From Haliotis rubra (lineage: Eukaryota): 64,000 nt of DNA. Position numbers and translations under genes: made by a program. Under the pieces are notes generated by a model. It saw only the letters and a program-made list of their open reading frames with translations. It was not told the origin of the DNA and did not search any database. Where the stretch lies: contig NW_025767346.1 in NCBI RefSeq assembly GCF_003918875.1, positions 248,001 to 312,000 on the forward strand, written 5' to 3'. This document shows, one piece after another, positions 8,786 through 53,618 of the stretch (positions are counted from its first letter, which is position 1; the number at the start of each line of letters is the position of its first letter).

Positions 8786-9033
8786 CTACTCGTGGTTGTT
8801 GAAGTCGTAATCAGCTGAAGTAGTCGGCTGTCTCCTTAACAGTCTGTTGATGAAGGTCCTGCAGTGTTCTTTCTGGTCGTTGCTGAAGTCGCTGCAGATG
8901 CTTAGAATTCTGTCACTTTTCTGTAGCTGAGTCAATTCCTTCTGTCGGTGGATGGAACTAAGATCGGGATTAAAAAGACCACTGCCCAAATTCACGGATC
9001 CTCTGTCACCACAGTAGATCACCGTCACGTCGG
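8786..9033 (-). CDS. 2-TM coiled-coil gene B, last exon (C-half of the alpha/beta domain)
   Basis: tttcAG acceptor, phase 1. (A)DVTVIYCGDRGSVNLGSGLFNPDLSSIHRQKELTQLQKSDRILSICSDFSNDQKEHCRTFINRLL...*. Homologous to 38854-38649. Confidence 0.85.
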
Positions 9034-9419
9034 CTGAAAGAGTGAGTGAGTGAGTGAGTTAGTTTAGTTTTACGCCACACTCGGTGTTACTGACACCTCC
9101 ATAACACTCTCAGCCTGGATTCCTGTGCACCTCTAAATCACATTTTAAACTGATTAAAACTTAAAATTTCATTTAACCTCTCCAATGAATGCATTGTTCT
9201 AATACGATATTGTCAGTATTTCCTGAAAACCTTTAATACGTTTCACTAGGCTCACGTCCACTTTTCTTAGCGCCTGATACAACTTCCCTTATTACTTTTT
9301 GACATAACTTTTAGGCTTACCCCAAGACGCCACTCTCCTACTTTCCCTTGACACAACTTCACATCTCACCACCAAAGCTACTGACACACCTTTATATCTT
9401 ACCCTCTGACACAACTCAC

Positions 9420-9741
9420 CTCCAAACCTCCAGAGACTCCGCACAGTGGTCACCCTGAGATCGCCAAGCCCCTTAGTGGGATCCTCCAAGATGACGTGCC
9501 GCTCATTGAAGTCGACAAAGACGAGGAAGACGCGCGATCCCGGCAGTTGTTTAATGTCTGCGTGGCACCGGATGACCCGAGTGTGGATGGTGGGACATGG
9601 TTGCTGCACAGACTCGAACACAGACCTGGTCTGATCGGCATGTTTCATCTCCGTCTCGGTATGGAAGGTCACAATACACAGGGAGTCCTCCATCGGCCCC
9701 GTCCACGACAGCTCGTACTTCTCCTCACGTCGGAAGCCCCT
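9420..9741 (-). CDS. 2-TM coiled-coil gene B, exon with the N-half of the alpha/beta (TIR-like pattern) domain
   Basis: ctgcAG acceptor (phase 0) and GGAG|GTGAGT donor (phase 1). Contains VFVDFNERHVILEDPTKGLGDLRVTTV, shared with 39609-39294. Confidence 0.85.
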
Positions 9742-9779
9742 CTGCAGATAAACAGACATAGTTATGGTAGTGGTTATAT

Positions 9780-9910
9780 NNNNNNNNNNNNNNNNNNNNN
9801 NNNNNNNNNNNNNNNNNNNNNNNNNNNNNNNNNNNNNNNNNNNNNNNNNNNNNNNNNNNNNNNNNNNNNNNNNNNNNNNNNNNNNNNNNNNNNNNNNNNN
9901 NNNNNNNNNN
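9780..9910. other. Assembly gap (N run)
   Basis: Ns in the sequence. Confidence 1.
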
Positions 9911-10199
9911 GTAGTCGTAGTCGTAGTCGTCGTAGTCGTAGTCGTAGTCTCTAAATATGTCAGTCTTACCAAGATAGTTTAGCGGCTGACATCGATCAAG
10001 TCGCGTCAGCGCGTCGCAAAGTCTAGGAGGTAATTACACCCGGAAAAAACAGGTTATAGGTTATAGTCACATGACTGAAGTTATCCCCCGGGGTACCCAT
10101 GAACAGAAGCAATTTTGAACAAATTCACTTTCCTTAGGCGAGCCCCACATGTTTCGTTGTTCGGCAGGACTGAAGTCCAAGAAACTATCAGAAGTCAGG

Positions 10200-10300
10200 C
10201 TGCCAAACACGGTCACCTATCCACAGACCCTCCGCGCCCAACGTTGCTTAACTTCAACTGATTTGTGACCTGAGCTCTATGCACAGGACCACACACCACC
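10200..10300 (-). mobile_element. 5S-rRNA-derived SINE head or 5S pseudogene fragment
   Basis: Reverse complement GAAGTTAAGCAACGTTGGGCGCGG...TGGATAGGTGACCG resembles the 5S internal control region (GAAGTTAAGCAACGT...TGGATGGGTGACCG). The flanks are not 5S. Confidence 0.55.
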
Positions 10301-10389: not shown

Positions 10390-12377
10390 CAATAGTAGTA
10401 GTAGTGGTAGTAGCAGTAGCAGTTGTATTATTAGTAGTGGGAGTAGTTGTAATAGTAGCAGTAGTAGTAGTTGTAATAGTAGTAGTAATAGTAGTAGGTT
10501 GAGTAATCGAAGTAGTGGCGGTAGTCGTAGAAAAAAGGAGTAGTCGAAGTATTAGTAGGAGTAGTAGTACAAGAGGAAGAAGTAGTCGAAGTAGAAGTAG
10601 TACAAGAGGAAGAAGTAGTCGAAGTACAAGAGGAAGAAGTAGTCGAAGTAGTAGTAGTACAAGAGGAAGAAGTAGTAGTAGGAGTAGTAGTACAAGAGGA
10701 AGAAGAAGTCGAAGTAGTAGTAGTAGTACAAGAGGAAGAAGTAGTCGAAGTAGTAGTAGTACAAGAGGAAGAAGTAGTCGAAGTAGTAGTAGTACAAGAA
10801 GAAGAAGTAGTCAAAGTAGTAGTAGTGCAAGAGGAAGAAGTAGTCGAAGTAGTAGTAGTAGTAGTTGTAACAGTAGTAGTAACTGCTGCAGGTTGAGTAA
10901 TCGAAGTAGTGGTGGTAGTCGTAGAAAAAAAGAAGTAGTCGAAGTAGTAGTAGGAGTAGCAGTACAAGAGGAAGAAGTAGTCGAAGTAGTAGTAGTAGTA
11001 GTAGTAGTTGTAACAGTAGTAGTAACTGCTGCAGGTTGAGTAATCGAAGTAGTGGTGGTAGTCGTAGAAAAAAAGAAGTAGTCGAAGTAGTAGTAGGAGT
11101 AGCAGTACAAGAGGAAGAAGTAGTCGAAGTAGTAGTAGTAGTACAAGAGGAAGAAGTAGTAAAAGTAGTAGTAGGAGTAGTAGTGCAAGAGGAAGAAGTA
11201 GTCGAAGTACAAGAGGAAGAAGTAGTCGAAGTAGTACAAGAGGAAGAAGTAGTCGAAGTAGTAGGAAGAGGAAGAAGTGAAGTGAGTGAGTAGCACAAGA
11301 GGAAAAAAGTATTCGAAGTAGTAGTAGTACAAGAGGGAAAAAGTGAAGTGGAGAAGTAAAGTAGTAGTACAAGAGGAAGAAGTAGTCAAAGTAGTACAAA
11401 GTAAGAGAGTAGTAGTACACAAGGAGGAAGAAGTAGTCGAAAGTACAGGAGGAAGAAGTATCGAGTAGAAGTGAGTACAAGAGGAAGAAGTAGTCGAAGT
11501 ACAAGAAGAAGAAGTATTCAGTAGTAGTAGTACAAGAAGTAGTCGAAGAGTAGGAAGTACAAAGAGGAAGAAGTAGATCGAAGTACAAAGAGGAAGAAGT
11601 ATTCAAGTAGTAGTAGTACAAGAAGAAAAGTATTGAAAGTAGTGAGTACCGAGGAAAGTAGAAGGAAGAAGGAAGAAGTAGTGAGTAGGATGTAGTGAGT
11701 ACAAGAGGAAGAAGTAGTCAAAGAAGTAGTGAGATGGTGAGTGAGTACTAAAGAGGGAGAGAAGTAGTCGAAGTACAAGAGGAAGAAGTATTCCAAGTAG
11801 AAGTAGTACAAAGTGAGTAGTAAATAGAGTAGTCCACAAGAGGAAGAAAGTCGAAGTAGTAGTAGTACAAGAGGAAGAAGTAGTCAGAAGTATTAGTAGT
11901 AGTACAAAGAGGAAGAAGTGAAAGTAAAAGTAGTGAGTAGTATGTAGTAATTACAAGAGGAAGAAGTAGTCGAAAGTACAAGAGGAAGAAGTAGTCGAGT
12001 AGTAAGTACAAGAGGAAGAAGTAGTCAAGTGAGTAGTAGTAGTACAAGAGAGGAAGAAGTAGTCGAGAAGTACAAAAGAGGAAGAAGTAGTGATCGAAGT
12101 AGTAGTAGTAATTACAAGAGGAAGAAGAAGTCAAAAGAAGTAGTAGTACAAAGGAGGAAGAAGTATTCGAAGTAAAAGAGGGAGTAGAAGTAAAAGTAGT
12201 AGTAGGAAGTAGTACAAGAGAGGAAAAGTAGGTCAGAAGTACAAAGAGGAAAAGAGAGTAGTCGAAGTAGTAGTGAGTACAAAGAGGAAGAGTAGTCAAG
12301 TAGTTGTGAGTACAAAGAAGGAAGAAGTAGTCAAAGTAGTAGTAGTACAAAGAGGAAGAAGTAGTCAAAGTAAGTAG

Positions 12378-12408
<31 letters not shown>

Positions 12409-13780
12409 TAGTAACAGTAGTAGTAGCTTCTGCAGAGAAGTAAGAAGTAGTTGTAACAGTAGTAGTCGAATTGAACAAAAGAGAAAATAGTACAAGAAGT
12501 AGTAGGAGAGTAGTACAAAAAGAAGAAGAAGTAGTCGAAGTAGTAGCACAGAGGAAGAGAAGTGTACAAGATCAAAGTAGTCAAAGTAGTACAAGAAGGA
12601 AGAAGTAGTCAAAGTAGTAGTAGTACAAAGAGGAAGAAGTAGTCAAAGTAAGTAGTAAGTACAAAAGGAACAAGTAGTGAAAGAAGTAGTAGAAGAAGTA
12701 CAAAAGAGGAAGAAAAGTAGTCGAAGTAAGAGTAGTGCAAGTACAAAGAGGGAACAAGTAGGAGTAGTAGTACAAAGAGGGAAGAAGAAGTGAGAAGTGT
12801 AGTGAGTACAAGAGGAAGAAGTAGTCAAAGTGAGTACAAGAAGTGAGGTCAAGTAGTAGAAGTAAGTACAAAGAGGAAAAGTAGTCAGTAGTAGTAGTAC
12901 AAGTTATGTCACAGTAGTAGTAAAGGTTGGGAAGAAGTGTGAGTCAAAAAAGTAGAAGTAGAAGTAGGAGTAGTAGTACAAGAGGAAGAAGTAGTCAGAG
13001 TAGTAAAGTAGTAAGATGGTAGTAGTACAAGAGGGAAGAAGTAGTCGAAGTGGTAGTAGTACAAAGAGGAAGAAGAAGAAGTAGTCGAAGTAGAGGAAGT
13101 GAGTACAAGTAGGAGTGAGTAGTCAAAGAAGAAGTGTCGAAGTAGTACAGGAGGAAGAGTAGTCGAAGTAGTAGTAGTAGTAGTAGGAAGAAGTAGTTTA
13201 AACAGTAGTAGTAACTGCTGCAGGTTGAAGTAATCGAAGTAGTGGTGGTAGTAGTAGACAAGAAAAGAAGTAGTCGAAGTAGTAGTAGGAGTAGCAAGTA
13301 CAAGAGGAAGAAGAAGTAGTCGAAAGTAGTAGTAGTAGTAGTAGTTGTTAACAGTAGTAGTAACTGCTGCAGGTTGAGTAATCGAAGTAGTGGTGGTAGT
13401 CGTAGAAAAAAAGAAGTAGTCGAAGTAGTAGTAGGAGTAGTAGTACAAGAGGAAGAAGTAGTCGAAGTAGTAGTAGTAGCACAAGAGGTAAGAGTAGTAA
13501 GTGTAGTAAAGTTGAGTAGGGAATAGAATTAGTCAAGTAGAAAGAAGAAAAGAAGTAGTCGAAGTAGAAGTAGGAGTAGTAGTACAAGAGGAAGAAGTAG
13601 TCGAAGTAGTAGTAGTACAAGAGGAAGAATTAGTCGAAGTAGAAGTAGAACAAGAGGAAGAAGTAGTCGAAGTAGTAGTAGTACAAGAGGAACAAGTAGT
13701 CGAAGTAGTAGTAGTACAAGAGGAAGAAGTAGTCAAAGTAGTAGTAGGAGTAGTAGTACAAGAGGAAGAAGTAGTCATGT
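10390..13780. repeat. Compound (GTA)n / GTACAAGAGGAAGAAGTAGTCGAA satellite filling a gene B intron; middle part is indel-rich
   Basis: Read directly; it produces all the Y/T/L-rich pseudo-ORFs here. Confidence 0.9.
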
Positions 13781-13955: not shown

Positions 13956-15027
13956 CTAAAAGACAAAAACATATGCAGACATGTGGCATAAATCATTAAA
14001 GAGCAGCCATTCAAAATTAAATCACTTGCTGCCCCGTTCTGAAATACGACATAATGTGTTGAAGCCTTCCACCAACCCGAGTGGATATTCAGAAAAGGAA
14101 ATGGACGTTTACGCGTTACGGTATACCTATTTGTTTGTTGTTTGACTCGTTCAAATATTCATTGAAGACCTATCTTTTCAGGACATATTACGAGTGACTT
14201 GTACAACTGCTGCAGTTGTTAGCTGTACACACGGCGCCCCATGAGCATACACTTTTAATAGTGTGTGGATACGGCGCCATACAAATGGACATGATTATGG
14301 CTTACGCTGCACTCAGCAGTATTCCAGCTACATGGTGGCGTCCTATAAATAATCGAGGCTGGACCAGACAATCTAGTGATTGACATCGATGTGTATACAT
14401 GTAACTGAACCGTAATCTAATCAAACAGCAAAGAACACCGATTAGCACAGACTACATTCTTGCATCGAATTACGTTGAAACCCATGAAGTAATTTCTTGG
14501 TCGTGTTTCATTGACTTGCTACCACTCGGTCTTTACTTAACAACTGCTTATCAATATATCCTGAGTTGGATATACATGATTTGTGTGTTTGTTGTTTTAC
14601 GCCGCACTCAGCAATATTCCAGATATATGGCGGCGGTCTGTAAATAATTTAGTCTGGACTAGACAACCCAGTGATCAACAGCATGAGCATCGATCTCCGC
14701 TATTGGGATACGACATGTGTCAACCAAGTCAGCATGCCTGAACACCCAACCCCGTTAGTCGCCTCTTAAGACAATCATGAGTTGCTGAAGATCAGTTCTA
14801 ACCCGGATCTTCACGGGTGAGACAATCATGGGTTCCTGCAGATCAGTTCTAACCCGGATCTTCACGGGTGGAAATACACAATGCCTTTCAGAAAGAGGTT
14901 AAATGTAACGTATGTCAAACTGATCATTACACTTTCTGAATAATGACCTGGTCTGGTATTTATTGGGGGCGAGTTCCATGTGGGTTTCGAACCCACACTG
15001 CCAGCGTGTCTGTCTGAGCGTACTCAC

Positions 15028-16705
15028 CGTGATATGCTGATTTGCCTTTCAGCTGACTCAGCTCAGCCTTGGTCATGGCGCCGTCTAGTTCCTCCCCGTC
15101 TAGTTTCCTGTCAGTGTTGTCATGCTTTCCCGCAAATTCTGCCACTTTCTTGTTTGTGGCGTTGCGGTGCTTTTGAAACTCTACATATGTCCAATTCGCC
15201 CAAACAATGTGAGCTTTTATAAGATCTCCATTTGTGCTGGTGTTCCGTTGGACTTGTTCCACTTCTTGATGGACAACGTCTATGTCTTGTTTGAGGGTCG
15301 GTATTTCCTTAAGCACAAGCTCATTTCTCCAAGACGCTAATGACTCAACACTTTGTTTTGTTACGTTCAATTGTGAAGAAAGATGTTCAGCCGTTATATT
15401 TATTGCGGTAATGTTTGATGTGATATTTCCCACTGATTGTGTCACTGCTTCAAGCTTCTCGGAGTTACTAAAGACCTGCGTCCGAACAGACTCAGTTAAA
15501 TGTTGAAGGCTATTTACATTTTCCTGAAGATTTGCGACGTCAAAACCCAAAACCTTAGATACGTTCTTCAACGTTTCCACTTCTCTCTTCACAGAATCAT
15601 TTTCGTCCATAAATTCTTTCTCCCTTTTATGGATTTCGTTTATGTGCTTATGGAACTCAACATATTTGTCTTTTGCCAATAGAATATGACCTTGAAGTAA
15701 TCGTGAACTCTCACTTGCATTTTGTCTCGCCTCCTCCAGCAATTTACGATTATCTGTTATGTTCTGTTTAATCATGGGCAATTCCTTCTCAGAGATCTCA
15801 GTTCTCCAAGACAGTAACAAAGCCGTGCTTTCTTTCATAGCCTGATCCATGGTTGACATTGTACTATTGATGCCAGCCATTTTTGTGGTGATGCTTTCCA
15901 CTTCCAGTGAAAGTTCCTGTACATTCCTTGCATTTTCTGCCGCAGCCTTCTCAGCATCTTCGGCCATCTTCCGTGTGGCATCTCCCGTATCTGCAATCTG
16001 CCTTTCCCGTGCGTCTAAGTCAGCAAGCCTTGCGGACACGGCTGTAACATTATGGGCGAGCTCTGAGACAGTGGTATTAACAGAGGTGACATTGATGGAA
16101 ATATTTCCTACATCCTGCACCAGTGCATCAACCTTCTCCAACCAGCCTTCGACGCCACGTGTCGCATCTTTTGCATCTTGTCGGATTTTCGGCAGTTCCA
16201 AATTCACAATGTCAGTTTTCCAAACATCAATATTTTCAACACGATTAGTCAAGGACTCCATCTGATCAGAGAGTTTTGAGACCGTTGAGTCCAGTCTGTT
16301 TACACTGTTTGTAAGTTTCTCCAATTTTTTGGGGTGATCTTCAGTTATATCCTTGTGATTCTGTGTATTATGACCAGGTTGGGATACAGCCTCCTCCCCA
16401 TCCTCTTCTAACTCGTGAACTCTCTTTTCCAACCTGGCAACTCTTTCTTCCATAACTTTCGACTGCTTAGCGAGTTCCTCAATTGTATAACCCTTACGTT
16501 TCAGGCGAGTGCGACATGTTTCCGTGCTTCCAAGTGTCTTGTCGTTCCTCTCCGACTTTTCAAACGTTTGTTTCAAACATTGTTTCTCTGGGCCATGTTT
16601 GTAGAAAGGGTATGGAGAAGCGTCTGGAATACCCCAAGAAAGCACGCTGATCAGGAAGAGAATTGTGATGAAGAGCATCAATGTAGTCCTGTCTCTAATT
16701 GCCAT
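15028..16705 (-). CDS. 2-TM coiled-coil gene B, large exon (signal/TM1 + about 535-aa glycosylated coiled coil). Model: 16705-15028, 13955-13816, 9741-9420, 9033-8786 = 795 aa
   Basis: Acceptor at 16711-16710; ATG at 16705 (MAIRDRTTLMLFITILFLISVLSWG); about 16 N-x-S/T sequons; donor CACG|GTGAGT. All phases are compatible (2388 nt). An upstream exon is unresolved. Confidence 0.85.
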
Positions 16706-17419
16706 TACGCTGAAATGACAAGTGAAAGATAACATCATTGGACATCACATTGTAGCTATGATATGCTGGAGGGAGGGAGTATGGTTTTACGCCGCTTTTA
16801 GTAATATTCCAGCAATATCACGGCGGAGGACACCAGAAATGGGTTTCGCACATTGTACCCATGTGGGGAATCGAACTCGGGCATTCGGCGTGACGAGCGA
16901 ACACTTTAAACACTAGGCTACACCCCACCCACCCCCACCCCACCCAGTCCCAATGATATGCTGGAACTCATGTAGGCATTTATATTGTAAAATGTATTTA
17001 TCTTCACAAATATTGCATACCCGCATATTTCTATTTGCTTTAATCAAAGTAAATCTACAAAAAAAATATAATAGGTAAGTTTTTATAGCTATAAATCACC
17101 ATCAGAAAGATTACATATGAGACCGTTTTGTGTCATAAAAGCTGATATTTAATGTCGGTTAGCCTACATCTGTTGTTGTTCTACCCAGAATGGGAACAGC
17201 GAAACACAATGGTTCTCATAGAACGCTATATATAATTTTGAAAGTAACAAATAAACCCGTTTAAATTGAAAGGGAATCCCAGTGAAATGGGAAATCCTGA
17301 ACCTGATGGAATTTAGGCTTGCTTCATTTACTGCTTTAGCATTGCAGGGAGGGCTGGGCAGTAAGGACAATAATGTGGTTCAGCAGAGACCAGTCTAATC
17401 TATGGTCTCTCAGTTCAAT

Positions 17420-17662
17420 ACCCGTGAAGGTCCGGGTTAGAATATTGATCTTCAGTAACCCATGCTTGTCGTAAGAGGCGACTAACGGGATCGGGTGGTC
17501 AGGCTCGCTGACTTGGTTGACACATGTCATCGGTTCCCAATTGCGGAGATTGATGGTCATGTTGTTGATCATTGGATTGTCTGGTCCAGGCTAAATTATT
17601 TACATACCACCGCCATATATCTGGAATATTGCTGTGTGCGGCGTAAAACTAAACTCACTCAC
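17420..17662 (+). mobile_element. Non-tRNA short retroposon family 2 (ACCCGTGAAGRTCCGGGTTAGAA...GCTGGAATATTGCT..GCGGCGTAAAAC)
   Basis: Many full or partial copies: about 4510, 14590-14870, 19060-19270, 33485-33690, 36795-37030, 40270-40495, 42490-42710, 50500-50750, 52245-52470, 56225-56440, 58065-58205 and 60743-61135. Confidence 0.85.
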
Positions 17663-17919
17663 TTCTCAGTTCAGGGACTGTGAGATAGACTATGGTTGTC
17701 ACCATGGCCTTCTCGAGTTATTTCCCTTGAATGATCAAGGCATCTAGCTTAAGTTTCTCTGTGGCCCGACATGCTTGTGTCTCTACCGTGTAAACTATAA
17801 GTATCGTATCACACATTGTGTACCTTGTGAGCCGCTATGGCGCCAGTAACTTATCAGCGTCGATTCTTCCAATAGACTTTGTCTTTTGTGCCACGTATCA
17901 TTCCAACAAAATGAAACAC

Positions 17920-18023
17920 ACTGGGAATCCCACAGGGAACTACATACTATATGACCTCTGACCCTGGCCCTGAAGCGAGCATCATGTAATCGTAATTTGA
18001 CCTAAATTCGAGTTCCAGGAAAC
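17920..18023. promoter_or_regulatory. Gene B / GTPase-1 intergenic module: kB site GGGAATCCC, TGACCTCTGACCC, TGACCTAA, GAS site TTCCAGGAA
   Basis: Motifs at 17923, 17952, 17998 and 18013. The kB-to-TGACC spacings of 29 and 75 nt are identical to gene A. Extra kB-like sites at 17272-17280 and 17289-17297. Confidence 0.6.
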
Positions 18024-18522
18024 GGGAACCATATGCAACTGACTAAATGCAACGTGTACATGCTATTTGATGACAGAATGTGCGAGACAGATTGAGGAGG
18101 TAGGTTGTTGTTGTAAATGTGTGAACATCTATAAATAACCTAATCTATAAAAGATTTATTGATAGCGGTGATCATGCTCAAGAGGGCGTGGTCTGTCGTT
18201 CTTCCTTTTTTATCAAGTGGGTAGGTAGGTATAGGCAGGTATGTGGGTAGGTAGGTACAGGTAGGTATAGGCCAGTGAGTGAATGAGTTTTACGCTGCTT
18301 TTAGCACTATTTCAGCGATATCACAGTGGGGGACACCAGAAATGGGCTTTGCACATTGTACCCATGTGGGGAATCGAACCCAGGTCATCGGCGTGACGAG
18401 CAAACACTTTAACAACTAGGCTACCCCACAGCCTAGCCTTTGAGGATTCAGCCATTAACAATATCAATTACTTATTTAAACTACCAATCATAAAAGTACA
18501 TCTATTTACAAAAATATATTAA

Positions 18523-18755
18523 TTAAAATTTGTCAATCAATTCTACCTCTTTTAAATATTCAATCTTAAAATGGTAATTAAGATTATGAAAAAGATCCTT
18601 CAATGGTTTGACATTAAAATATTTACCAGTTGTGATGGAAAAATCAACACAGTCAAGTAGGACATGCTTGACCGTGATTCTTTCATCACAAGGGATGCAA
18701 AACGGAGGATCCTGACCTTTCAATAATTATTCTGAGTGTAAGTGTGTATATCGCG
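18523..18755 (-). mobile_element. 3' fragment of an I/Nimb-clade LINE ORF2 (C-terminal CCHC knuckle)
   Basis: KGQDPPFCIPCDERITVKHVLLDCVDF...KYFNVKPLKDLF. Confidence 0.65.
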
Positions 18756-19269
18756 TAGGGAACTGCTGCAGGAGTGAGTGAGTGAGTTTGGTTATACGCC
18801 GCTTTTAGCAATATTCCAGCAATATCACGGCGGGGGACACCAGAAATGGGCATAACACATTGTACCCATGTTGGGAATCGAACCTGGGTCTTCGGCGTGA
18901 CGAGCGAACGCCTTAACCACTAGGCTACCCCACCTCCCCAACTTCTGCAGGAATGAGTAATGGTTGAATAGACACAATTAAATTCAACGTACGTACGTAT
19001 AGACGTATCTTGCTCAATCATTACATTGTCGTACTATATGTTACAGATATGTTTGTTTTTGTTTGTTGTTTAACGCCGCACTCAACAATATTCCAGTTAT
19101 ATGGCTGCGGTCTGTAAATAATCAAGTCTGGACCAGACAATCCAGTGATCAACAGCATGAGCATCGATCTAGGAAATTGGTATGCGATGACATGTGTCAT
19201 TCAAGTCATTGAACCGGACCACCGTATCCCGTCAGTCGCCTCTTACGACAAGCATGGATTGCTGAAGAT

Positions 19270-19783
19270 GTATAAATAACTCCTTGTAGAAATCTATATT
19301 GAAAATCTAAAAGTTTTGTGTCTTGCAATCCTTTTCTGTATGCTGTAAATATATTTTTCCAATCAAAGTCTATTTCAGGAAATAGCAGCTGCCATTTATT
19401 ACACATATTTGGGTGTATATCATTGGAAATAAGTTTATCATAAAAAGTCCTTCATCCTGAAGTGATGTTTTTACTAGATATATCTGGCATTGGTTAATAT
19501 TTAAATCCCTGGCTGGTATAAAAAGACAGTGGTTAAGAGCATTTATCCAAGAGTCAGGTAAGACATGTAGTTAATATTTATAATCTAAAAAAGTGCTTTT
19601 GATACCATATATTTCTTTTAAAGATTCTATTGACAATAATCCAGTTTCATCACAAATATCCCAAATATTTATAATTCCTTTATCTGCCCAGTTATTTATG
19701 AAGTTTAATGAATTTTTTAAATTATGATTAAACCATAATGGTTGGGATTTGTGCACAGTTTCCTGGGCTACCTGGTACCACAA
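19270..19783 (-). mobile_element. Degraded L1/Tx1-type LINE ORF2 C-terminal fragment
   Basis: QPLWFNHNL...WADKGIINIWDI and W..IF....LQDTKLLDFQYRFLQ motifs, broken by stops. Confidence 0.65.
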
Positions 19784-19846
19784 CTACACCAGTCAGCCCT
19801 GCAAACCACACATTGCCTGACTTAAAGAGAGAAAACACCAGAAGTC

Positions 19847-20079
19847 ATGGACCATCAAAAGCGACGGCTTCAGGCGCAGATAAAGGACAATTTACAGAAG
19901 ATTGGACGGCGACTAAATGGACGACCTATGACTGTGGCTTTTATTGGAACCATTGGAGTTGGCAAGTCTTCCCTAATCAACACCATCGCGACGGCCATGG
20001 GCACCGGATTTTGGCAGCAACACGCTTACACTGGAGGCCACGGGGGTCAGGCTGACCCGGTCACGGCAGTCATCAGAAG
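19847..20079 (+). CDS. IFI44-like: IFI44-like GTPase 1, exon 1 (G1, G2). Model: 19847-20079, 20832-21166, 30148-30506 = 308 aa
   Basis: VAFIGTIGVGKSSLINTI Walker A; AG|GTACGG donor, phase 2. All three exons join in frame (927 nt). Confidence 0.85.
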
Positions 20080-20099
20080 GTACGGCTCTATAATATAAG

Positions 20100-20133
20100 G
20101 ATCATCATCATTGTCATCGTCACGATCACAATG

Positions 20134-20184
<51 letters not shown>

Positions 20185-20400
20185 ACATCAACGTCAACAC
20201 CACCACCCTCTACCTCGACCTCCCTCTTTTCATCATGATCATAATCGTCATCATCATGATCATCATCATCATCATCATGATCACGATCGCAATCCTCCAA
20301 CCCGATCTCCTCCTTTTCATCACCACCACCACAACCATCATCATCATCATCATCATCATCGTCATCATCATCATCATCATCTCCGTGATCGCAGTCCCTC
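20100..20400. repeat. (CAT)n microsatellite in GTPase-1 intron 1
   Basis: Read directly. Confidence 0.9.
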
Positions 20401-20831
20401 AACTCGTCTTTTAATCATCATCGCCACAACCATCATCTTAATCATATAAACCACAATTCTCCGCCACCATCATCATCAAGTCTGTAATGATCAACGCCAT
20501 CACAGTCATCACCATCAGCATCCGCAAAGTATGAGAGACTTTGTTCAGGAAGTGTATTATAATCACCAAACTCTCCAAAACATAATATGGTAACTTGTGT
20601 TGTATTTGTACAATCTCAAAGCTGCAAGTTAATTGCATCAGGTATAACATAATCATAGTTTATATCTGTTTCCCAATGAAAGCCGTTTAGTTACTCATAC
20701 GCTAAATCTCATGACGTAAAGACTAAGAGGATGTACATGTAATTTGAGTGTAAAAATAGCTAACCAGTTTTTATTGCAGTTTCCATTCATTATCATGCTT
20801 CTGTCGTGTTGTACCCTGTGTATGTCCGTAG

Positions 20832-21166
20832 ATATCCACAATGTTGCCGACCGGAAGAGCATCGTAACCAGCTCTTCCCAACTCTAATGGACGTCCAGGG
20901 ACTTCCGGATCATCCTGACGCCATCTGGCGGGAGGCTCTGTCCCTTTTGTTCTATGGGCATATTCCCGAGGAAGCAAACCTGCACGACGTGGTAGACTAC
21001 CTACAGGCCAGGGATGACATACGGCGTCCGAGGTACATTCGAGGTCGCGACCGCCTGAAGGTGGACCGGGTTGTCGTTGTTGCCTCTGCCCAGGAACATT
21101 TACCCAAGGGTCTGCTTGAATCTGTTGTTAAGATTGCCAGGCCTGTTAGCGGACGCAGTCGAAGAG
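20832..21166 (+). CDS. IFI44-like: IFI44-like GTPase 1, exon 2 (G3)
   Basis: gtAG acceptor. YPQCC...PTLMDVQGL...LLFYGHIPE...LKVDRVVVVASA. G|GTTAGT donor. Confidence 0.85.
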
Positions 21167-21199
21167 GTTAGTGGCATGTTTTCCTGTGGATGAAGAAAT

Positions 21200-30075: not shown

Positions 30076-30147
30076 AACCATAGTTGGTTCCAGCCCGCAA
30101 AGAAACACATTTAGTTTCAATGTAACAGGATACTTTTTCCCCAACAG

Positions 30148-30506
30148 GCATTCCCATATTTGGAATCATGACAAAGACTGATCTCGTAGACCCTGATGTC
30201 GACCTCGACTACCTGCAGAGGGAGGAGAAGTTCAAAGATATCTTAGGTCTACATGGCACGCCACGCTTCCTCCGATGCATCAACTACTGCAGCGCCATCG
30301 ACCCCGACAACAACATGATCTTCACCAGCTACCCATACATCGACGTCCCAGTACTTCGTCTTATGACCCAGATCTGTGACCCAGCCATAGAAGTAGTTCA
30401 TCAGCAGGAACCCTACCCCTACCGGCAGCTAGCCAGGGAAAAGACCTGCTGGATCGTGATGGCTATCGTTGTAATCTTTCTGGCGTTTGTATTTATTTTA
30501 CGTTGA
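30148..30506 (+). CDS. IFI44-like: IFI44-like GTPase 1, exon 3 (G4, NY motif, C-terminal tail anchor)
   Basis: acAG acceptor, phase 1. GIPIFGIMTKTD...RFLRCINY...IDVPVLRLMTQI...WIVMAIVVIFLAFVFILR*. Confidence 0.85.
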
Positions 30507-34579: not shown

Positions 34580-36044
34580 TAGGGCTTCAACGAGTCCATT
34601 TTCTTGGACTCGAGTACTCGAGGTGTGAGACTCGACTCGGACCCGAGTACTCGAAATTCATACCTTTCAAACAAACGATAGCGTAACCGGCATGACATGT
34701 GTTCCGATCACACAAGTGAACACTTACTTCTTTTCGATTTCATATCGTCGTGTGATTAACATTTCCTATTGGTCAGAATCAGTATTTGGATGTTTACTTG
34801 CCAAATGTTGCTTTTTTCATCGTACTGGTTGTACTGCCTGCATAAGGCGGTGGCATTTGGTTATTTTTCTCTTTTCAATATTATCCAGATCAAGACACGC
34901 CCATACATTTGATTTTTTATCGTTCTCCATGTCTGTTAAGATAGTTACCTAATCATTTTAAGAAGTGAAATCTCAAACGATGTATAATAATTACTCTCAT
35001 CTGCAGACTTGTAACAACTAATACCATACAGCCATACCGTGTGAGGAGTAAACTATTTAATCTAGGTGTTAATAAAAACATTATCAGATGGGTTAAAGAA
35101 TTCATGGTACATAGAACTCAGTATGTCAGTGTCAGTGGCTATCAATCTTCTTTCCTCTCAGCCTCTACTGGAGCTCCACAGGACTGTGTTCTTTCATCCG
35201 TACTCTTCGTTTTGTATACCAATGCCTGTTACTTGTCATTAAATGACTTGTTTACTGTGAAATTCGCAGATGACGCCACTGTTACTGGCCTAATTTCTGA
35301 TTCTGAACCTTATTATCGTCAAGGCATTGACAAAACCGTAATGACAGTTTTTATCAAACCTTTATTCAAAGTGTGTTGACATACAATTTTCTATGTTGGT
35401 ATGGGGTCTGTCTGATCGCAACAAAAACAAACTTTTCAAAATTGTTAATACTGCCGGCAAAAGTTCGAGTATATTCCTTTTATCTATGAGCGCCAGATTG
35501 TCAAAAAGGCAACTAAAATTAGATTTGATAGTTAACATATTTTATCTCACCATTTTGAAGTACTGCTTTCTGGACGCTGCTGTCGATTACCTTCCCTCAA
35601 AACAAACAGAGCTCGACAGTCTTTCATACCATTAAATATTCGTGAACGCAACAAATATTTTGAATTATCACCATGTGATAACAACTAGAATTATTCAGCC
35701 TCTGTACCTATGTGGTTAATTGAATTATATCATGTCAGTTTTATTGTGTAAATAGCTTTCGTTTTGTGCATGTAATTATTGTGTATATTTTTGTGAATTG
35801 TGTACATATTCATTTTGAGACAGTTTGGATGTATAAGAATTTCCTCCGGGATAATAAAGTTATATCTTATCTTAATATTAGACGTTAACGGCCGCTCATG
35901 CTCAGCACATGGCAGACAGTCTGTCAAAGTAACCCAACAATTCGAGCTATCTCCCCTTTTCGAGTCCTCGAGTCCTAGAAAATGGACTCGAGTCCAGCTA
36001 AACCCGACTCGTCTTCGAGTACTCGAGTACCCGTGGAAGCCCTA
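34580..36044. mobile_element. Non-autonomous hAT-type element (8-bp TSD) with a nested LINE fragment
   Basis: TAGGGCTTC...GAAGCCCTA ends, subterminal CTCGAGTACTCGAG repeats, TSD ATGTTGAG on both sides. Confidence 0.8.
35000..35875 (+). mobile_element. Degraded Rex1/Babar-like LINE reverse-transcriptase fragment
   Basis: WVKEFMVHRTQYVSV...STGAPQDCVLSSVLFVLYTN...KFADDATVTGLI; ends in an AATAAAGTTATATCTTATCTT tail. Confidence 0.75.
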
Positions 36045-44640: not shown

Positions 44641-45335
44641 GTGGCTGTAGACATTGCACATATGAAAAATAAGGGATCCTGTAAAACACGTTGGAACTTT
44701 GGCTGGTGGTTAGCTTGTAGCGCGTCAGTTCCGGGGATATCAGCCGCAGGATCTCTCTTGGTCACTGTAGTCTCTCTGTCAGGCGGTGCCCAATCTGGCT
44801 TTGCGTGTGTTTGTGATCCCTTAGTGCCGGGGGTATCTGCTGAAGTTTCTCTGTTGGTCACTGTGGTCTCTCTGTCAAGCGTTGTCGAATCTTGCTCTGC
44901 CTGTATTTGTGATCCCTTGCCTCCGTGTGTATGTGCCACAGGATCGCCGTTGGTCACTGTGGTCTCTCTGTCAAGCGTTGTCGTATCTTGCTCTGCGTGT
45001 ATTTGTGATCCCTTGCCTCCGTGTGTCTGTGCCACAGGAGGCCGTGCCGGATCTGGCTTTGCGTGTGTTACTGACCCTTCAGTAATGGAAGGCTCTGCGC
45101 CAGAGGACGCGTTTGCTTCTGTCCTCTCCTCACAGATACACTTGCTCGTCGTTTTGTCTTCTCGTAACCCTGTCTCTTTCAAATCGGCCGTTGCGTTACC
45201 GCCCGATGTATATTTATGCCCGACAACGTTTGTCTCCCTTTCATTTCCAGCCAGACCTCCAGTTAGGGTTGATTCATGTCCCGAACTTACTTCGCCTGTC
45301 ATCAGTGACGAGTTGTCCTGGTCCCTAGACGCCAT
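44641..45335 (-). CDS. 2-TM gene C, exon 1 (repetitive T/E/D-rich cytoplasmic tail). Model: 45335-44641, 41910-41603, 41104-40929, 39609-39294, 38854-38649 = 566 aa
   Basis: ATG at 45335; AC|GTAAGT donor, phase 2. All five exons join in frame (1701 nt). Confidence 0.8.
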
Positions 45336-45686
45336 TCAAGCGTGGAATAGACGTGGTTGTAAGAGCTGGCGACAAGTCGTCATTCGGAGTGCACTTCATA
45401 TGCTGATAGTTGTTATTCACTCTGTTTAACATGAATATTGTTCCACCCAGGCAATGACCAATGTCCAACCACCTGCTTCTCGCCCTCTCCAAGTGACATG
45501 GACTGCTCACGGAACTATTTCGCCTTCTCCCTGAAGAAATATATACGTAATGCTTGATCGGGTCCACTTCAATACATCCCCGCTCAGTCGTTAGTTAGAT
45601 TTCCAGGGCGAGAGGACAATGTATTTGTGTCTCCACGTTCTGTTTACTCACTGCGCAATAACATAAACCAGTCTCAAAGGTCAACC

Positions 45687-45760
45687 TGACCTAAACATCG
45701 CTTCCAAGAAACAAACGACACGCCTGCTGTAGAGGCAGTCTGGGATCCTGGGGATTCCCC
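45687..45760. promoter_or_regulatory. Gene C / GTPase-2 intergenic module: TGACCTAA, GAS site TTCCAAGAA, kB site GGGGATTCCCC
   Basis: Motifs at 45687, 45702 and 45750. TGACCTAA-to-GAS spacing is 15 nt, as upstream of gene B. Confidence 0.55.
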
Positions 45761-46355
45761 GAAATCCGCCTCACATATCAATCCCAACGCGTAAATAAAT
45801 AGTCCTTAATGCATCGTATCTCTTTGTTGTTAACATGCGATTTTAACCAACAGCATACCGCTTGCATATAAAATGAGTGTCATACGTTACAATATCATGC
45901 TGACATGATGAACATATATTGTTGAATCCGTATCGATCGAACGAACTGTTGTCGGCAACCGTGGCGGAGGAATATGTTGTTAAAAATAACCACACGTAAA
46001 GTTGAGCTCGGCGTAAGGATAAGAGGGCCTCGCCACAACAACACGACATATTTGTCTCGGAGGGGCTGAGAAGGCTGGACTTGAGGTAGGTGTAAGCAGA
46101 TTTATGTATTGTACACATTCTACACATACTGACATGATTTCATAGGGCTGTAGCGTGTATTATAACATGCCAGTCTCAATTTCTTGGCCTGAATATGTTA
46201 ACAAGTCACAGCCAGGAATGCGATTGAGCATGACAGTCTTCAGACTGTGACAGGGTGACCCTTGATACAACAGTTTTGTGTTTCAGTCTGAGCGAGCAAG
46301 TATGGTTTTGCGCCGCTTTTAGCAATACTCCAGCAATATCACGGCCGGCGACACC

Positions 46356-46526
46356 NNNNNNNNNNNNNNNNNNNNNNNNNNNNNNNNNNNNNNNNNNNNN
46401 NNNNNNNNNNNNNNNNNNNNNNNNNNNNNNNNNNNNNNNNNNNNNNNNNNNNNNNNNNNNNNNNNNNNNNNNNNNNNNNNNNNNNNNNNNNNNNNNNNNN
46501 NNNNNNNNNNNNNNNNNNNNNNNNNN
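46356..46526. other. Assembly gap (N run)
   Basis: Ns in the sequence. Confidence 1.
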
Positions 46527-49802: not shown

Positions 49803-49992
49803 ATGGATGACATTGATCGCGAATCCTTCTCCGTCTTGAGCCAAGACTCGGACGCCGAGACGGACATCCAGGAAGGGGACTGGACGCCAGACTTCCAGAA
49901 AAACCAGAAGAGATTGAGCCTCATCAGGAGGATACGGAAACATTGTGGAAAGGATGACGGCATCACCAAGCCTCTCAATGTTGTAGTTATAG
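49803..49992 (+). CDS. IFI44-like: IFI44-like GTPase 2, exon 1. Model: 49803-49992, 50773-50905, 51832-52172, 52888-53618 = 464 aa
   Basis: tttcAG acceptor ending at 49794; ATG at 49803; ...KPLNVVVIG|GTCAGT, phase 1. The exons join in frame (1395 nt). Confidence 0.8.
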
Positions 49993-50772
49993 GTCAGTAT
50001 TGATTTTGGCGGTGGGGTAGCTCAGTGGTTACAGCGTTCGCTTGTCACGCCAAAGTCCGGGTTGGATTCCACACATGGGTACAATGTGTGAAACCTATTT
50101 CTGGTGTCACCCGCCATGATATTGCTCGAATTTTGCCAACGTCGGCGTAAAACTATACTCACCAAATCTGTATTGATATAAATCCTGTCCTTCATGACAA
50201 GAAACGCGGAGTTGTAGAGTCGCTTCCCTTAGACGTTACAGAATCCTAGATCCAATTCTTTGGGTAATACTCCATTGCTTCCTTTATGGGAAGTCGATGG
50301 GTAGCCCGGTGGTTAAGGCGTTCGTTCTTCACGCCGAATACCCGGGTTCGATTCCCCACGTGGATACAATGTGTGAAACCAACTTCTGGTGTCGATTGCT
50401 GTGATGTTGTTGGAATAAAAGCGGCCTAAAACCTAACACACTCACTCCGTTTGTGTACACGAAGTGACCTAACACTTAACACTATATAACCCAACTCACA
50501 ACCCGTGAAGGTCCGGGTTAGAACTGGTCTTCATCAACCCATGCTTGTCGTAAGAGGCGACTAACGGGTGGTTAGGCTCGCTGGCCTGGATGACACATGT
50601 CATCGTATCCCAATTGCGTAGATCAATGCTCATGCTGTTGATCACTGGGTTGTTTGGTCAAGACTCGATTATTTACAATCCGCCGCCATGTAGCTGGAAT
50701 ATTGCTGAGTGCAGCCACAACAACAACAAAACCAAACTCACTTACTCACTCACTTTGTGTCTCTTTCTCCAG

Positions 50773-50905
50773 GGCCTGCTGGAGTTGGCAAGTCGGCGTT
50801 CATCAACACCGTCGGAGCAGCGTTTGATGGTGTCTGCTGGCGGGAACACAGCTACTCAGGGTCCCACGACAAAGCAGGAGATCAGATCACGGTATTCACT
50901 ACAAG
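50773..50905 (+). CDS. IFI44-like: IFI44-like GTPase 2, exon 2 (G1, G2)
   Basis: ctccAG acceptor. GPAGVGKSAFINTV...DQITVFTT. AG|GTAGG donor. Confidence 0.85.
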
Positions 50906-51831
50906 GTAGGATGCATGGTGAAGCCTCTTGAACTCGAGTGAGTTTACGTCGCTTTTAATAAAAACCCATCAAATTCACGGCGGGGAACCAGTAAATATAT
51001 AGGTTTACACGTTGTACCTTTGTAGGAAGTCGTACTGAGTCTTCAGCAACTAGAACTCGAAGCACATAAGTCGAATTATCCGAAGCATCACAGCTGCCAT
51101 TGTTGGGCCACACTGTCAAAAATAAACCTACGGGTATTTTAAAGCTCGAGTGAAGAGGTTTGCCCCCTTTTGCCCGCCAGGGTTCAATGATAGTTGGTCA
51201 AAAGCCTAGATTCCCTAATTACACGCCACTATTGCATGGCTTTGTTGATACTTCGTCGTTCGTCGCAGTCACTGCAGAAACGGTGCCATTTTAAACCTGA
51301 CATAGTGCCTAGGAGATAGTTTCTCTTGGCGCAAAGATAAGAAATTGGGTGGTTCTCACAAACACGTGCACAGAAGGCCCATTGGACACCTGTTATTGTT
51401 TCACTCCATTTCATTATCTGAGGGGTCGTTAGGGTAGTCCAGTTCGATCGTCATGCCAAAGACCCGGGTTCGATTCCCGAATTGGGTACAATGTGTGAAA
51501 CCTATTTCTGGTGTCCCGCAGCGTCATGTTGATGGTATATTGCTAAAAGCGGTGTAAAACAATACCCACTCACTATAGTCTACATTACTGAAGATCAATT
51601 CTAACCCGGGTTTCATGGGTTGTGAATATTCCAGTCATAGTGTTAACCCGGACTTTCACGGGTGGATTAAGCATTAATGGTTTCCATAAAATTGCTCTGA
51701 CACGTGTGTCATATCTACCAAACTCGAATAAACATTTACATATTACCTGGGAAATGTTCGAATCCTAAAACTAATAATGTCGATGTCAAACTTCCTTGGC
51801 ATGGTAACGTGAAACGTGTTTCGTTTGCTAG

Positions 51832-52172
51832 CTATGAAAAGTGCTGCAATGCCCAAAAGTACCCGGATGATCTGTTGCCAACACTCATCGATGTCGCTGG
51901 ATTCCACGACGAGGCGAGTGATAAGTTTGTGGAACTACTTCGCATTGTGTTCTACGGTCGACTTCCGGTGGGCGAATCACTAGCGGAAGCGGAGAGGTAC
52001 TACAACGACTGTGGATTGGAGGGACTCCGGTCAAAATACAACCAAAACAATGAGAAGCTGAAGGTTGACCGGGTCATCTTCCTGTCCTCAGCCACCCAGG
52101 ACTTCCCAGAGAACCTCATCTCGTGTGTGATTCAGGCAGCCAGACCGTCGGGCATCTATGACAAGAAAAGAA
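51832..52172 (+). CDS. IFI44-like: IFI44-like GTPase 2, exon 3 (G3)
   Basis: YEKCC...PTLIDVAGF...IVFYGRLP...LKVDRVIFLSSA. A|GTGAG donor. Confidence 0.85.
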
Positions 52173-52887
52173 GTGAGCAGTAGTTTTAAAAGGGATCCAG
52201 GCAGAATTGGTCACAGTACGTCATTGATGGTAGTACGATTAGTTTGTTGTTTAACGCCGCACTCAGCAATATTCCAGCTATATGGCGGCGGTCTGTAAAT
52301 AATCGAGTCTGGACCAGACAATCCAGTGATCAACAGCAGGAGCATCGGTCTACGCCGATACGTTGACATTTGTCATTCAAGTCAGCGAGCCTTACCACCC
52401 GGTCCCGTTAGTCGTCTCTTACGATCAGAATGGGTTACTGAAGATAAATTCTAACCCGGATCTTCACGGGTATCACGGTAAAGACTTGCTTCACTTACTC
52501 AATGCTCCAGATTTGCCTTAATTGTGTTTCAAGGGACCTTTGGGGGAATATGTTTCAGTATCATACCAATAAATAAGTTTCGAGAAGGCGGCTAATAGCA
52601 AATGCCTTCATCACTTCGACTGTCATCCCAAATGGAGCACTGAATGAGTGAATATGGTTTTACGCACATTTAGCAATATTCCGGCAACACAACGGAGGGG
52701 AGATAAAAAAAAGGGCCTCCCACGTGGGAAATCGAACCCGGGTCTTCGGCGTCACGACCAAACGCTTTAACCACTAGGCAACCCCACCGTCCCCGAATGG
52801 AGAAGATACTCCATGATATGATTAAAATACTCTGATATTGAAACAACATCTCTCATTCACTAATCAATACGACATTTTTTCTTTCAG

Positions 52888-53618
52888 CAATTCCTTTGTT
52901 CGGCGTCATGACGAAATATGACAAGGTGATCCCACAGGAAGAGTTTAAAAAACTGGAGGGAAAATCTGCCAATATTGACGTCATCGGGCACGAAGACTAT
53001 GCCGAGCGAGAGAGTAAGTTCATCAAGGCATTGGGTCTTGGGGGATCCAAACACCGGTTCCTCCGCTGCTCTAACTACTGCGATGACACAGACAAAGACA
53101 ACACGCGCATAGAGACCGTCATCCCTGACCTTGACCTTCCCGTGCTGAAATTCTTCACCCAGGTCAGTGACCCAGTGATGCAAGTGCTGAACAAGGGTGA
53201 GACCTACTCTCAAGGAATCGCACCTGAAACAATTCCAGTACAGGAAGCTGCGACCCCGACGCAAACGCCCGCACAGAAAGGCGGGACTGAAGTCAAAGGG
53301 AGCAAAATGGGCATCGTTGAAAATTTTGGAGAGACTGGTGTTTCGGTTCTGTTGATAACAATCGAGGCGATCTTTGTGGCGTTTTTCCTGTCCCTCCTTT
53401 TGAAGCCGCAGGTGGACGTCAACAAGGTGAAGGTCGCTTGTCAGTTTATGTCTGACCGGAAGACACCCCACGCCCAGGCCGGGATGACCGACATATGCAA
53501 GGCCGTGAGCGACTCGGATGTCTGGGCTGGTTTCACGTTCTATCTTGCACTTTTGATACTGATTGTCATAAGAGTAGCGTCGACGCTTTTCACCATAAAT
53601 ATCTTTAGACGAAACTGA
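52888..53618 (+). CDS. IFI44-like: IFI44-like GTPase 2, exon 4 (G4, NY motif, two C-terminal TM helices)
   Basis: IPLFGVMTKYD...RFLRCSNY...VSVLLITIEAIFVAFFLSLLL...WAGFTFYLALLILIVIRVASTLFTI. Confidence 0.85.

Follow-up and report, generated by a model that had tools for sequence, protein, structure and literature searches.

Two divergent gene pairs in one stretch of abalone DNA

Why does the blacklip abalone, Haliotis rubra, carry two copies of the same head-to-head gene pair, and do the products of the paired genes work together? We analyzed a 64,000-nucleotide stretch of the forward strand (contig NW_025767346.1 of assembly GCF_003918875.1, positions 248,001 to 312,000), which we call the window. 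Its sequence is 43% GC, and the assembly totals 1.38 Gb. Within the window, gene B diverges from the GTPase gene G1, and gene C diverges from the GTPase gene G2. B and C encode membrane proteins with a coiled coil between two predicted transmembrane (TM) helices, followed by an alpha/beta domain. On balance, we favor the view that B-G1 and C-G2 are two old copies of a pair whose members are made together and act in one pathway, which may be an inducible defense.

We rebuilt the four genes from orthologous proteins and canonical GT/AG splice sites (Table 1). The model of B was guided by its ortholog from H. asinina (P0003; 74% identity, 782 amino acids) and that of C by its ortholog from H. cracherodii (P0005; 65% identity, 452 amino acids). 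The model of G2 is identical to the NCBI protein P0145 (LOC124256811, 464 amino acids). The starts and ends of all four genes equal those given by an initial annotation of the window, which had been made from the letters alone, and both head-to-head pairs are real. The two assembly gaps in the window lie outside the coding sequence and touch no reading frame, and we left both unfilled; across the gap in gene B, no residue is missing relative to P0003.

The annotation had also described the copies as substantially diverged with exon phases kept. B and C are 36% identical over 271 amino acids (47% in the alpha/beta exon), and G1 and G2 are 39% identical over 277 amino acids. Homologous introns do keep their positions and phases: the introns shared by G1 and G2 are in phase 2 and then phase 1, and the last three exons of B and C begin in phases 1, 0, and 1. 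But two of the genes each have an extra intron, which lies just 5' of the P-loop in G2 and after the N-terminal tail in C.

The pairing recurs in distant molluscs

Linkage in other species was judged within 10 kb on either side of each gene. Recurrent divergent linkage outside this locus had been set beforehand as a test of the pairing, and we found it in H. cracherodii, in Gigantopelta aegis, and twice in Solemya velum. H. cracherodii has a complete C-G2 pair (the GTPase at 2013-5865 on the minus strand and the ortholog of C from 10001 on the plus strand). In Gigantopelta, the exon that encodes the N terminus of the GTPase P0149 (L015, 3304-3077) is 6.7 kb upstream of, and divergent from, P0009. 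In Solemya, P0007 and P0012 each have a divergent upstream neighbor that starts in the family-specific P-loop exon. With tblastn, this exon matches G1 exon 1 with E = 1.5e-7 and G2 exon 2 with E = 8.5e-8 at locus L017; at locus L022, the E-values are 3e-15 and 3.5e-12, respectively. At L017, 9.4 kb separate the two gene starts, so the tie between the genes need not always be a shared core promoter. In a chiton, Liolophura sinensis, the divergent neighbor of the GTPase P0152 encodes a 673-amino-acid coiled-coil protein with N-glycosylation sequons, whose 3' end lies outside the locus that was read.

H. rubra has only 3 GTPase and 4 alpha/beta copies in its 1.38 Gb, which leaves a negligible probability that the genes are neighbors by chance; the pair is therefore old. 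The lineages of Vetigastropoda, Neomphalina, and protobranch bivalves separated in the early Palaeozoic. Given the general phylogeny of molluscs, the pair predates the split of gastropods and bivalves, yet it is not obligatory.

In pairwise comparisons, orthology is congruent for the two genes. The alpha/beta protein of Gigantopelta is nearer to C than to B (alignment scores of 530 vs. 320), and its GTPase is nearer to G2 than to G1 (992 vs. 509). C also groups with Gigantopelta in the alpha/beta tree, with a value of 80 in the Shimodaira-Hasegawa-like approximate likelihood ratio test (SH-aLRT). The branches of the other pair are long: the stem of the Haliotis B/A clade is 1.02 and the branch of G1 is 2.35. 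These results fit a history in which the pair was duplicated as a unit and both members of one daughter pair then evolved faster. That both B and G1 sit on long branches is only a hint of co-evolution.

A mollusc family of coiled-coil membrane proteins

A profile built from the four abalone copies of the alpha/beta domain matched 116 representative clusters, and for 66 of these, E was 1e-10 or lower. We looked up 30 clusters, and all 28 of the named ones are from molluscs (Haliotis, Gigantopelta, Solemya, unionids, scallops, mussels, clams, and oysters). Annotations in this family are either uncharacterized or spurious coiled-coil names. For 49 domain sequences (E ≤ 5), as well as for full-length proteins, Pfam gave only sub-threshold noise of the coiled-coil type, and there was no match to TIR, TIR_2, or related profiles. 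A profile search of PDB sequences with the domain returned zero matches. By its sequence, then, the alpha/beta domain is apparently an unnamed family that is confined to molluscs.

An AlphaFold2 model from the 49 sequences (predicted local distance difference test score of 90.6) has a five-stranded parallel alpha/beta/alpha fold of about 170 amino acids. The C-terminal ends of strands 1, 3, and 4 carry the invariant and near-invariant residues F30, I84, E86, P88, G93, Y114, and D117 (numbered along P0005:296-470). Because this is the usual ligand site of flavodoxin-like folds, the modelled domain likely has a binding or catalytic pocket.

The structural neighbors of the domain include the RRS1/RPS4 TIR (Z = 9.9, the top match), the EngA/EngB GTPases (9.6), IRGQ (9.2), and CheY receivers (8.4). 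Other TIR domains score 8.0-8.5, with those of SARM1, MyD88, and Hydra at 8.0-8.3. Foldseek template modeling scores (TM-scores) range from 0.39 to 0.48; in an atlas of predicted structures, TIR_2 and ThsB reach 0.54, alongside flavodoxin, MMR_HSR1, and ParA. The invariant E86 (within ILEDP) sits in the loop between strand 3 and helix 3, and TIR box motifs 1-3 are not evident. As modelled, the fold is generic flavodoxin-like, which leaves the label "TIR-like" from the initial annotation unproven: the fold class and the top-scoring TIR of RRS1 agree with it, but the sequence searches do not, and GTPase and CheY folds tie.

The proposed topology, in contrast, extends to the whole family. Two TM helices precede the alpha/beta domain in 29 of 37 full-length members, and NxS/T sequons are four-fold denser between the TM helices than after the second one (2.0 vs. 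0.5 per 100 amino acids). This fits a coiled coil that is external or lumenal and an alpha/beta domain that is cytosolic. The length of the coiled coil varies across the family from about 75 to about 750 amino acids.

The cytosolic N-terminal tail of C is only 44% identical to the tail in H. cracherodii. This part of the first coding exon includes a 96-bp repeat (3.1 copies, 44743-45039) that encodes a 32-amino-acid unit, THGGKGSQI-AEQD-TTLDRETTVTN.

Membrane-anchored GTPases without a TLDc domain

Relatives of the GTPases were recovered with a 272-amino-acid stop-to-stop open reading frame (ORF) of H. cracherodii as the query. Those of G2 comprise Haliotis proteins of the G2 and G3 types, P0149 from Gigantopelta (51.5% identical to G2, or 47% by BLASTP), P0152 from the chiton (33%), and P0153 from Batillaria. 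The GTPase motifs known as G1, G3, and G4 (GxGVGKS, D(V/I)AG, and TKxD) are invariant across gastropods and the chiton (alignment A3) and are present in the product of gene G1. The ARP and NYC motifs are also invariant in this alignment, as are two cysteines in the loop between the two C-terminal TM helices of G2. The P-loop begins at about residue 65, with about 55 amino acids before it. The GTPases had been described as membrane-anchored, and C-terminal anchors are indeed predicted for both: a single TM helix in G1 and two in G2.

What kind of GTPases are these? In P0145 and P0149-P0153, we found no TLDc domain (PF07534) at E ≤ 0.1, and Pfam gave only sub-threshold P-loop matches. By language-model features, the nearest named cluster is "interferon-induced protein 44-like" (0.96). 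In the sets of predicted-structure neighbors, 5 of 10 are clusters of IFI44 or of mollusc proteins with TLDc and GTPase domains (TM-scores of 0.43-0.44, normalized by the query). Among solved structures, in a PDB set that does not include an IFI44 structure, the matches are to the group of Toc, GIMAP, septin, and IRG proteins. Toc33 is the best of them (Z = 11.6 over 207 aligned residues), and GIMAP4 and septin follow at 9.6-9.7. Matches to IRG profiles are weak (E of about 5e-4) and cover a helix and the P-loop, and phmmer searches with the GTPase exons found no matches among PDB sequences.

We think that these GTPases probably have an IFI44-like G domain. By architecture, they are not canonical IFI44 proteins. 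The "IFI44-like" label of the initial annotation thus has moderate support: it agrees with the language-model features and the predicted-structure neighbors, but we obtained no significant sequence alignment to vertebrate IFI44, and TLDc is missing.

First exons and promoters

Evidence from RNA is for the B-G1 pair: contigs from four runs of one study (about 50 Mb each) were compared with positions 14100-20099. We took these runs to be RNA because they are too small to be genomic and because they contain spliced contigs. On the B side, contigs cover 15123-16709 and end at an acceptor (CAG/C) that is 4 nt before the ATG at 16705. Two contigs that reach 16709 continue with 87 and 94 more letters, which match 17824-17910 and 17824-17917, respectively, next to a canonical donor; this defines a non-coding first exon of B. 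On the G1 side, three runs (X2, X3, and X4) contain a joint from 18097 to 19757 (GT..AG) whose sides are as long as 74 letters, and the donor of coding exon 1 (20079/20080) is seen both as contig ends and as run-on. Exons of B and of G1 are present in the same four runs; this is co-presence, as contig depths are not comparable. The outermost bases supported by RNA are 17918 and 18024, so the first exons of B and G1 are at most about 105 bp apart.

The kB/GAS module that had been noted between the genes (GAS: gamma-activated site) sits between these first exons. Both pair promoters contain a 26-nt composite motif (TGACCTAAA-N6-TTCCRRGAAAC), on the same strand, and it occurs nowhere else in the 1.38 Gb; a reversed control motif has zero matches genome-wide. 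The composite is thus unique and not a repeat element, yet it is no independent discovery, as the pattern was derived from these two sites. In the C-G2 promoter, the distance between it and a perfect kB palindrome is 45 bp. The motif blocks of C-G2 and the donor GAG/GTAGGT are conserved in H. cracherodii in an 830-bp stretch with 73% identity, and the other 3.6 kb of this intergenic DNA aligns with that species only in short interspersed nuclear elements (SINEs). Between the intergenic regions of the two pairs, blastn found only SINE similarity, apart from the short motifs.

In the chiton, a stretch of about 130 bp (L024, 6900-7060) contains a site like an interferon-stimulated response element (ISRE), GAAACTGAAA, then a perfect kB site, GGGAATTCCCC, and a TGACCT half-site. 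These lie between the GTPase P0152 and its divergent coiled-coil neighbor, near the latter. Rel or STAT factors may bind such candidate sites.

What ties the two genes together?

We propose that B-G1 and C-G2 are old paralogous copies of a pair that was present in early molluscs. One partner would be a double-pass membrane protein with both ends in the cytosol, a glycosylated coiled coil that is external or lumenal, and, at its C terminus, a 170-amino-acid flavodoxin-like domain with a conserved pocket. The other would be an IFI44-like P-loop GTPase that lacks TLDc and whose C terminus, as a tail anchor or TM hairpin, fixes it to a membrane. Each pair would be transcribed outward from a compact shared promoter with NF-kB-like and STAT/GAS-like sites, so that the two products are made together. 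Because the pairing was kept and the pair was duplicated as a unit, the partners most likely act in one pathway, and their joint site of action would be the cytosolic face of a membrane. In the likeliest mechanism, the coiled-coil protein would sense or tether something on the non-cytosolic side, and its cytosolic domain would then recruit or regulate the GTPase as an inducible defense effector.

In sum, the data directly show the gene models, the topology features, the two protein families, the recurrence of the linkage, and the close spacing of the B and G1 first exons; we infer co-regulation, functional coupling, and an immune role: the two genes probably work together, and possibly do so in innate immunity. 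The immune role is suggested by the IFI44-like character of the GTPases, by the candidate kB, GAS, and ISRE motifs, and by the published response of IFI44 to virus in oysters (PMC7460283, PMC4198667). A bolder version holds that the pair is an ancient, mollusc-specific membrane defense module without a described counterpart. Here, an extracellular coiled-coil sensor or tether, anchored at both ends, would have a cytosolic orphan domain with a TIR/flavodoxin-like fold that binds a nucleotide or turns it over and exerts direct control over the GTPase, with both genes under one NF-kB/STAT-responsive bidirectional promoter. We consider this version rather unlikely. A predicted complex of the G domain of G2 (residues 40-335) with a C-type alpha/beta domain scored 0.00; as it was run without controls, it speaks neither for nor against binding.

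Several observations weigh against the account that we favor. In Mytilus, Potamilus, and Mercenaria, we found no GTPase in the 10 kb on either side of the alpha/beta genes tested, and further alpha/beta genes in tandem intervene (in Saccostrea, the contig is too short for a verdict). The upstream neighbor of the Batillaria GTPase is a tandem GTPase, not an alpha/beta gene, and in H. rubra itself, no GTPase adjoins A0 or A, the other two alpha/beta copies. Congruent trees had been proposed as a check, and the pairwise comparisons with Gigantopelta do agree, but the deep nodes of both trees (9 rows for the GTPases and 51 for the alpha/beta domain) are not resolved, and G1 has its long branch. 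A word-limited HMMER search found no significant match to vertebrate IFI44, and NCBI names none of these GTPases IFI44-like but calls them uncharacterized. That the four runs, from a single study, are RNA is only a guess, and their contigs can neither rank expression nor fix start sites. Finally, kB and GAS are short motifs: they are not enriched in the intergenic regions of Solemya, and their counts in Solemya and Gigantopelta are not convincingly above the shuffled expectation.

Could the two genes be tied only by their promoter? If a bidirectional promoter cannot be divided, the genes would stay together even if their products work in separate processes and never touch. The short distance between the first exons of B and G1 suits this idea, as does the fact that several bivalve lineages have lost the pair while neither family shows signs of disappearing; the complex prediction offers no support for contact, though no evidence against binding either. 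But the pair was duplicated and then kept as a unit in Haliotis, Solemya has two pairs, the distant gene starts at L017 do not suit a shared core promoter, and both members of B-G1 are on long branches. We view co-regulation alone as unlikely, though it merits serious consideration. Simple persistence of neighbors by chance, in regions that rearrange slowly and were copied by ordinary segmental duplication, strikes us as very improbable. One duplication event would explain both Haliotis pairs, and the Haliotis species are close relatives, but the same orientation and adjacency are found in Vetigastropoda, Neomphalina, and a protobranch bivalve, and the low copy numbers given above make chance adjacency negligible.

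A functional pair need not be an immune one. A hairpin-anchored GTPase that acts in the manner of atlastin or mitofusin, together with a lumenal coiled-coil tether, could traffic or shape membranes in the secretory pathway or in an organelle. In favor of this reading, a TM hairpin at the C terminus does follow the G domain, and the structural matches include mitofusin, Fzo1, and bacterial dynamin-like proteins, albeit with very large root-mean-square deviations. Transcripts of B and G1 also occur in runs for which no challenge of the animals is known. Against it, no helical bundle separates the G domain from the TM helices, and the nearest relatives are of the IFI44 type, not the dynamin type. 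A role in trafficking would also leave aside the intergenic kB palindromes in Haliotis and the kB and ISRE-like sites in the chiton. An immune role would also suit a family that has expanded in tandem and whose copies evolve fast and are partly broken. A trafficking pair therefore seems to us distinctly improbable, and we continue to favor a co-made pair with a possible role in inducible defense.

Unpaired copies in H. rubra

The genome of H. rubra has four copies of the alpha/beta exon, all in tandem on one contig (A0, A, B, and C), and three of the GTPase (G1, G2, and G3). The initial annotation had listed A as a third, tandem paralog. A is in tandem with B, but it is a frameshifted chimera, with a 5' half like A0/P0002 and a B-like coiled-coil segment, and a further copy, A0, lies before the start of the window (contig positions 231992-240727). 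The frameshift is near 3773 (3761-3776), within MGQIQG/KADEAK. The NCBI model XP_046546719.1 (P0001) fuses exons of A with the 3' exons of A0.

G3 is on another contig (C2687, 135012-140895) and is 60% identical to G2. No alpha/beta gene was found near it in the stretch from 97 to 167 kb, which covers about 40 kb on the 5' side and about 27 kb beyond the 3' end. The last exon of G3 has a frameshift and an in-frame stop that replaces the leucine of the G4 motif (GF-stop-TKQDKV). Its orthologs in H. asinina (P0151) and H. rufescens (P0150) are intact, and the H. rubra copy is either a pseudogene or an assembly error. Upstream, there is a tandem expansion of the exon-start motif AIPVFGVRQ. The unpaired copies look worn, as A and G3 show, with assembly error a possible cause.

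Repeats and other DNA

Most of intron 2 of G1 is a minisatellite. Several of its frames lack stops on either strand, which gives spurious ORFs of up to 1317 amino acids. In intron 2 of B, about 3.4 kb (10393-13776) consists of degenerate trinucleotides of the AGT/TAG type and of 24-143-bp repeats; on the minus strand, these give Thr/Ser-rich "mucin-like" ORFs. We rejected both tracts as coding, as the ortholog-guided models skip them. The introns of paralog A (628-1200 and 1733-2322) contain 26-bp tandem repeats, TGTCTACACTTGACTACACTCAGCCC. The introns and intergenic DNA are saturated with copies of two SINE-like families (about 160 and about 220 bp long, 70-92% identity), to which nearly all of the nucleotide similarity between the two pair regions is due. 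Copies lie at 16769-16929, 18274-18433, and 18773-18939 and at 17420-17649 and 19058-19269, with dozens more. Between G1 and C, an ORF at 35041-35379 has a reverse-transcriptase-like motif (FADDATV) and is probably a fragment of a retrotransposon that lacks long terminal repeats. In the chiton, an intron of the coiled-coil gene (L024, 342-2223) contains a cysteine-rich tandem repeat that translates as CVMYHSVLCHVSLCAVSCITL, with several frames open.

Table 1. Features of the window, in window coordinates. TM1 and TM2 are predicted TM helices; sites in promoters are candidates.
Feature	Position	Strand	Description
Gene B, coding sequence	16705-8786	-	795 amino acids; exons 16705-15028, 13955-13816, 9741-9420, 9033-8786
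Gene B, exon contents	16705-15028; 13955-13816	-	short tail, TM1, N-glycosylated coiled coil of ~530 amino acids; TM2
Gene B, alpha/beta domain	9741-9420; 9033-8786	-	first part; second part and stop
Gene C, coding sequence	45335-38649	-	566 amino acids; exons 45335-44641, 41910-41603, 41104-40929, 39609-39294, 38854-38649
Gene C, exon contents	45335-44641; 41910-41603; 41104-40929	-	232-amino-acid cytosolic tail; TM1 and short coiled coil; TM2
Gene C, alpha/beta domain	39609-39294; 38854-38649	-	
GTPase G1, coding sequence	19847-30506	+	308 amino acids; exons 19847-20079, 20832-21166, 30148-30506; transcribed part from 19759
G1, exon contents	19847-20079; 20832-21166; 30148-30506	+	P-loop GTIGVGKS; DVQG; TKTD, NYC, single C-terminal TM
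GTPase G2, coding sequence	49803-53618	+	464 amino acids; exons 49803-49992, 50773-50905, 51832-52172, 52888-53618
G2, exon contents	50773-50905; 51832-52172; 52888-53618	+	P-loop; DVAG; TKYD, NYC, two C-terminal TMs
B non-coding first exon (minimum extent)	17824-17918	-	donor AAG/GTAC at 17824, acceptor at 16709
G1 non-coding first exon (minimum extent)	18024-18099	+	donor GAG/GTAGGT, intron to AG at 19757-19758
B/G1 core bidirectional promoter	17919-18023		between outermost RNA-supported first-exon bases
kB-like site, B/G1 promoter	17923-17931		GGGAATCCC
GAS, B/G1 promoter	18013-18021		TTCCAGGAA
TGACCT half-sites, B/G1 promoter	17952; 17998		
C-G2 promoter motif cluster	45678-45765		AGGTCAaccTGACCTAAA; GAS TTCCAAGAA at 45702; palindromic kB GGGGATTCCCC at 45750-45760
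Putative donor of G2 non-coding first exon	46079-46093	+	GAG/GTAGGT; matches G1 donor 18097-18105, conserved in H. cracherodii
Assembly gap	9780-9910		gene B intron 2, 38 nt upstream of acceptor CAG/AGG at 9741
Assembly gap	46356-46526		C-G2 intergenic, probably inside a G2 5' untranslated-region intron
Paralog A	1-5537	-	exons ~5537-5340, 4480-2371, 1657-1250, 356-210; alpha/beta exons just outside window start
Minisatellite	21197-29926		8.7 kb, 21-bp unit, 416 copies, 86% matches; most of G1 intron 2

Significance and comparison with known systems

To our knowledge, the mechanism of IFI44-type GTPases is still unclear. A partner gene that has been attached since before the split of gastropods and bivalves provides a concrete, testable hypothesis for what IFI44-like GTPases act with. 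If the pair is a defense module of the bolder kind, an IFI44-type GTPase would have a mechanistic partner for the first time. Two TM helices around an external coiled coil are an unusual architecture for a receptor. In a review of molluscs, the antiviral role of IFI44-type GTPases in invertebrates was described as not yet established (PMC7460283). The pair would also provide new candidate resistance loci for the aquaculture of abalone and oysters. Herpesviruses cause mass mortality in both. Even mere co-regulation would make the genes a clear case of a bidirectional promoter that is deeply conserved in Lophotrochozoa. Our literature search found no description of the alpha/beta family, of the gene pairing, or of the LOC identifiers; the family and its recurrent pairing with the GTPase family are new here.

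Among known systems, IFI44 and IFI44L share with the abalone-type GTPases a G domain with GxxGxGKS, DxxG, and TKxD, and they are the nearest named neighbors by features and by predicted structure. The abalone-type GTPases differ in lacking TLDc and in having one or two C-terminal TM helices. Resemblance to IRG/IIGP, Toc33/34, GIMAP, and septins is limited to weak profile and structure matches over generic elements of the G domain, and both architecture and C-terminal anchors differ.

Like TIR proteins (TLR/IL-1R, SARM1, and plant and bacterial TIRs), the coiled-coil partner has a membrane-proximal, cytosolic, flavodoxin-like domain of similar size. An invariant glutamate is in the loop after strand 3, where the catalytic glutamate of TIR NADases sits, and the two are putatively equivalent. 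Unlike TIR domains, the alpha/beta domain has no sequence match in Pfam or PDB across its 49 members, and box motifs are not recognizable. The glycosylated external or lumenal coiled coil, held in the membrane at both ends, and the candidate promoter of the NF-kB/STAT type recall tetherin (BST-2). We found no homology to tetherin, and here the second anchor is a TM helix, instead of glycosylphosphatidylinositol, that leads into a folded cytosolic domain of 170 amino acids.

The arrangement itself recalls conserved bidirectional gene pairs, which are likewise divergent, with first exons about 100 bp apart (as for B-G1), and kept across distant species. In contrast to those pairs, the genes here are not housekeeping genes but encode lineage-restricted, tandemly expanding membrane proteins, and the pair itself has been duplicated.

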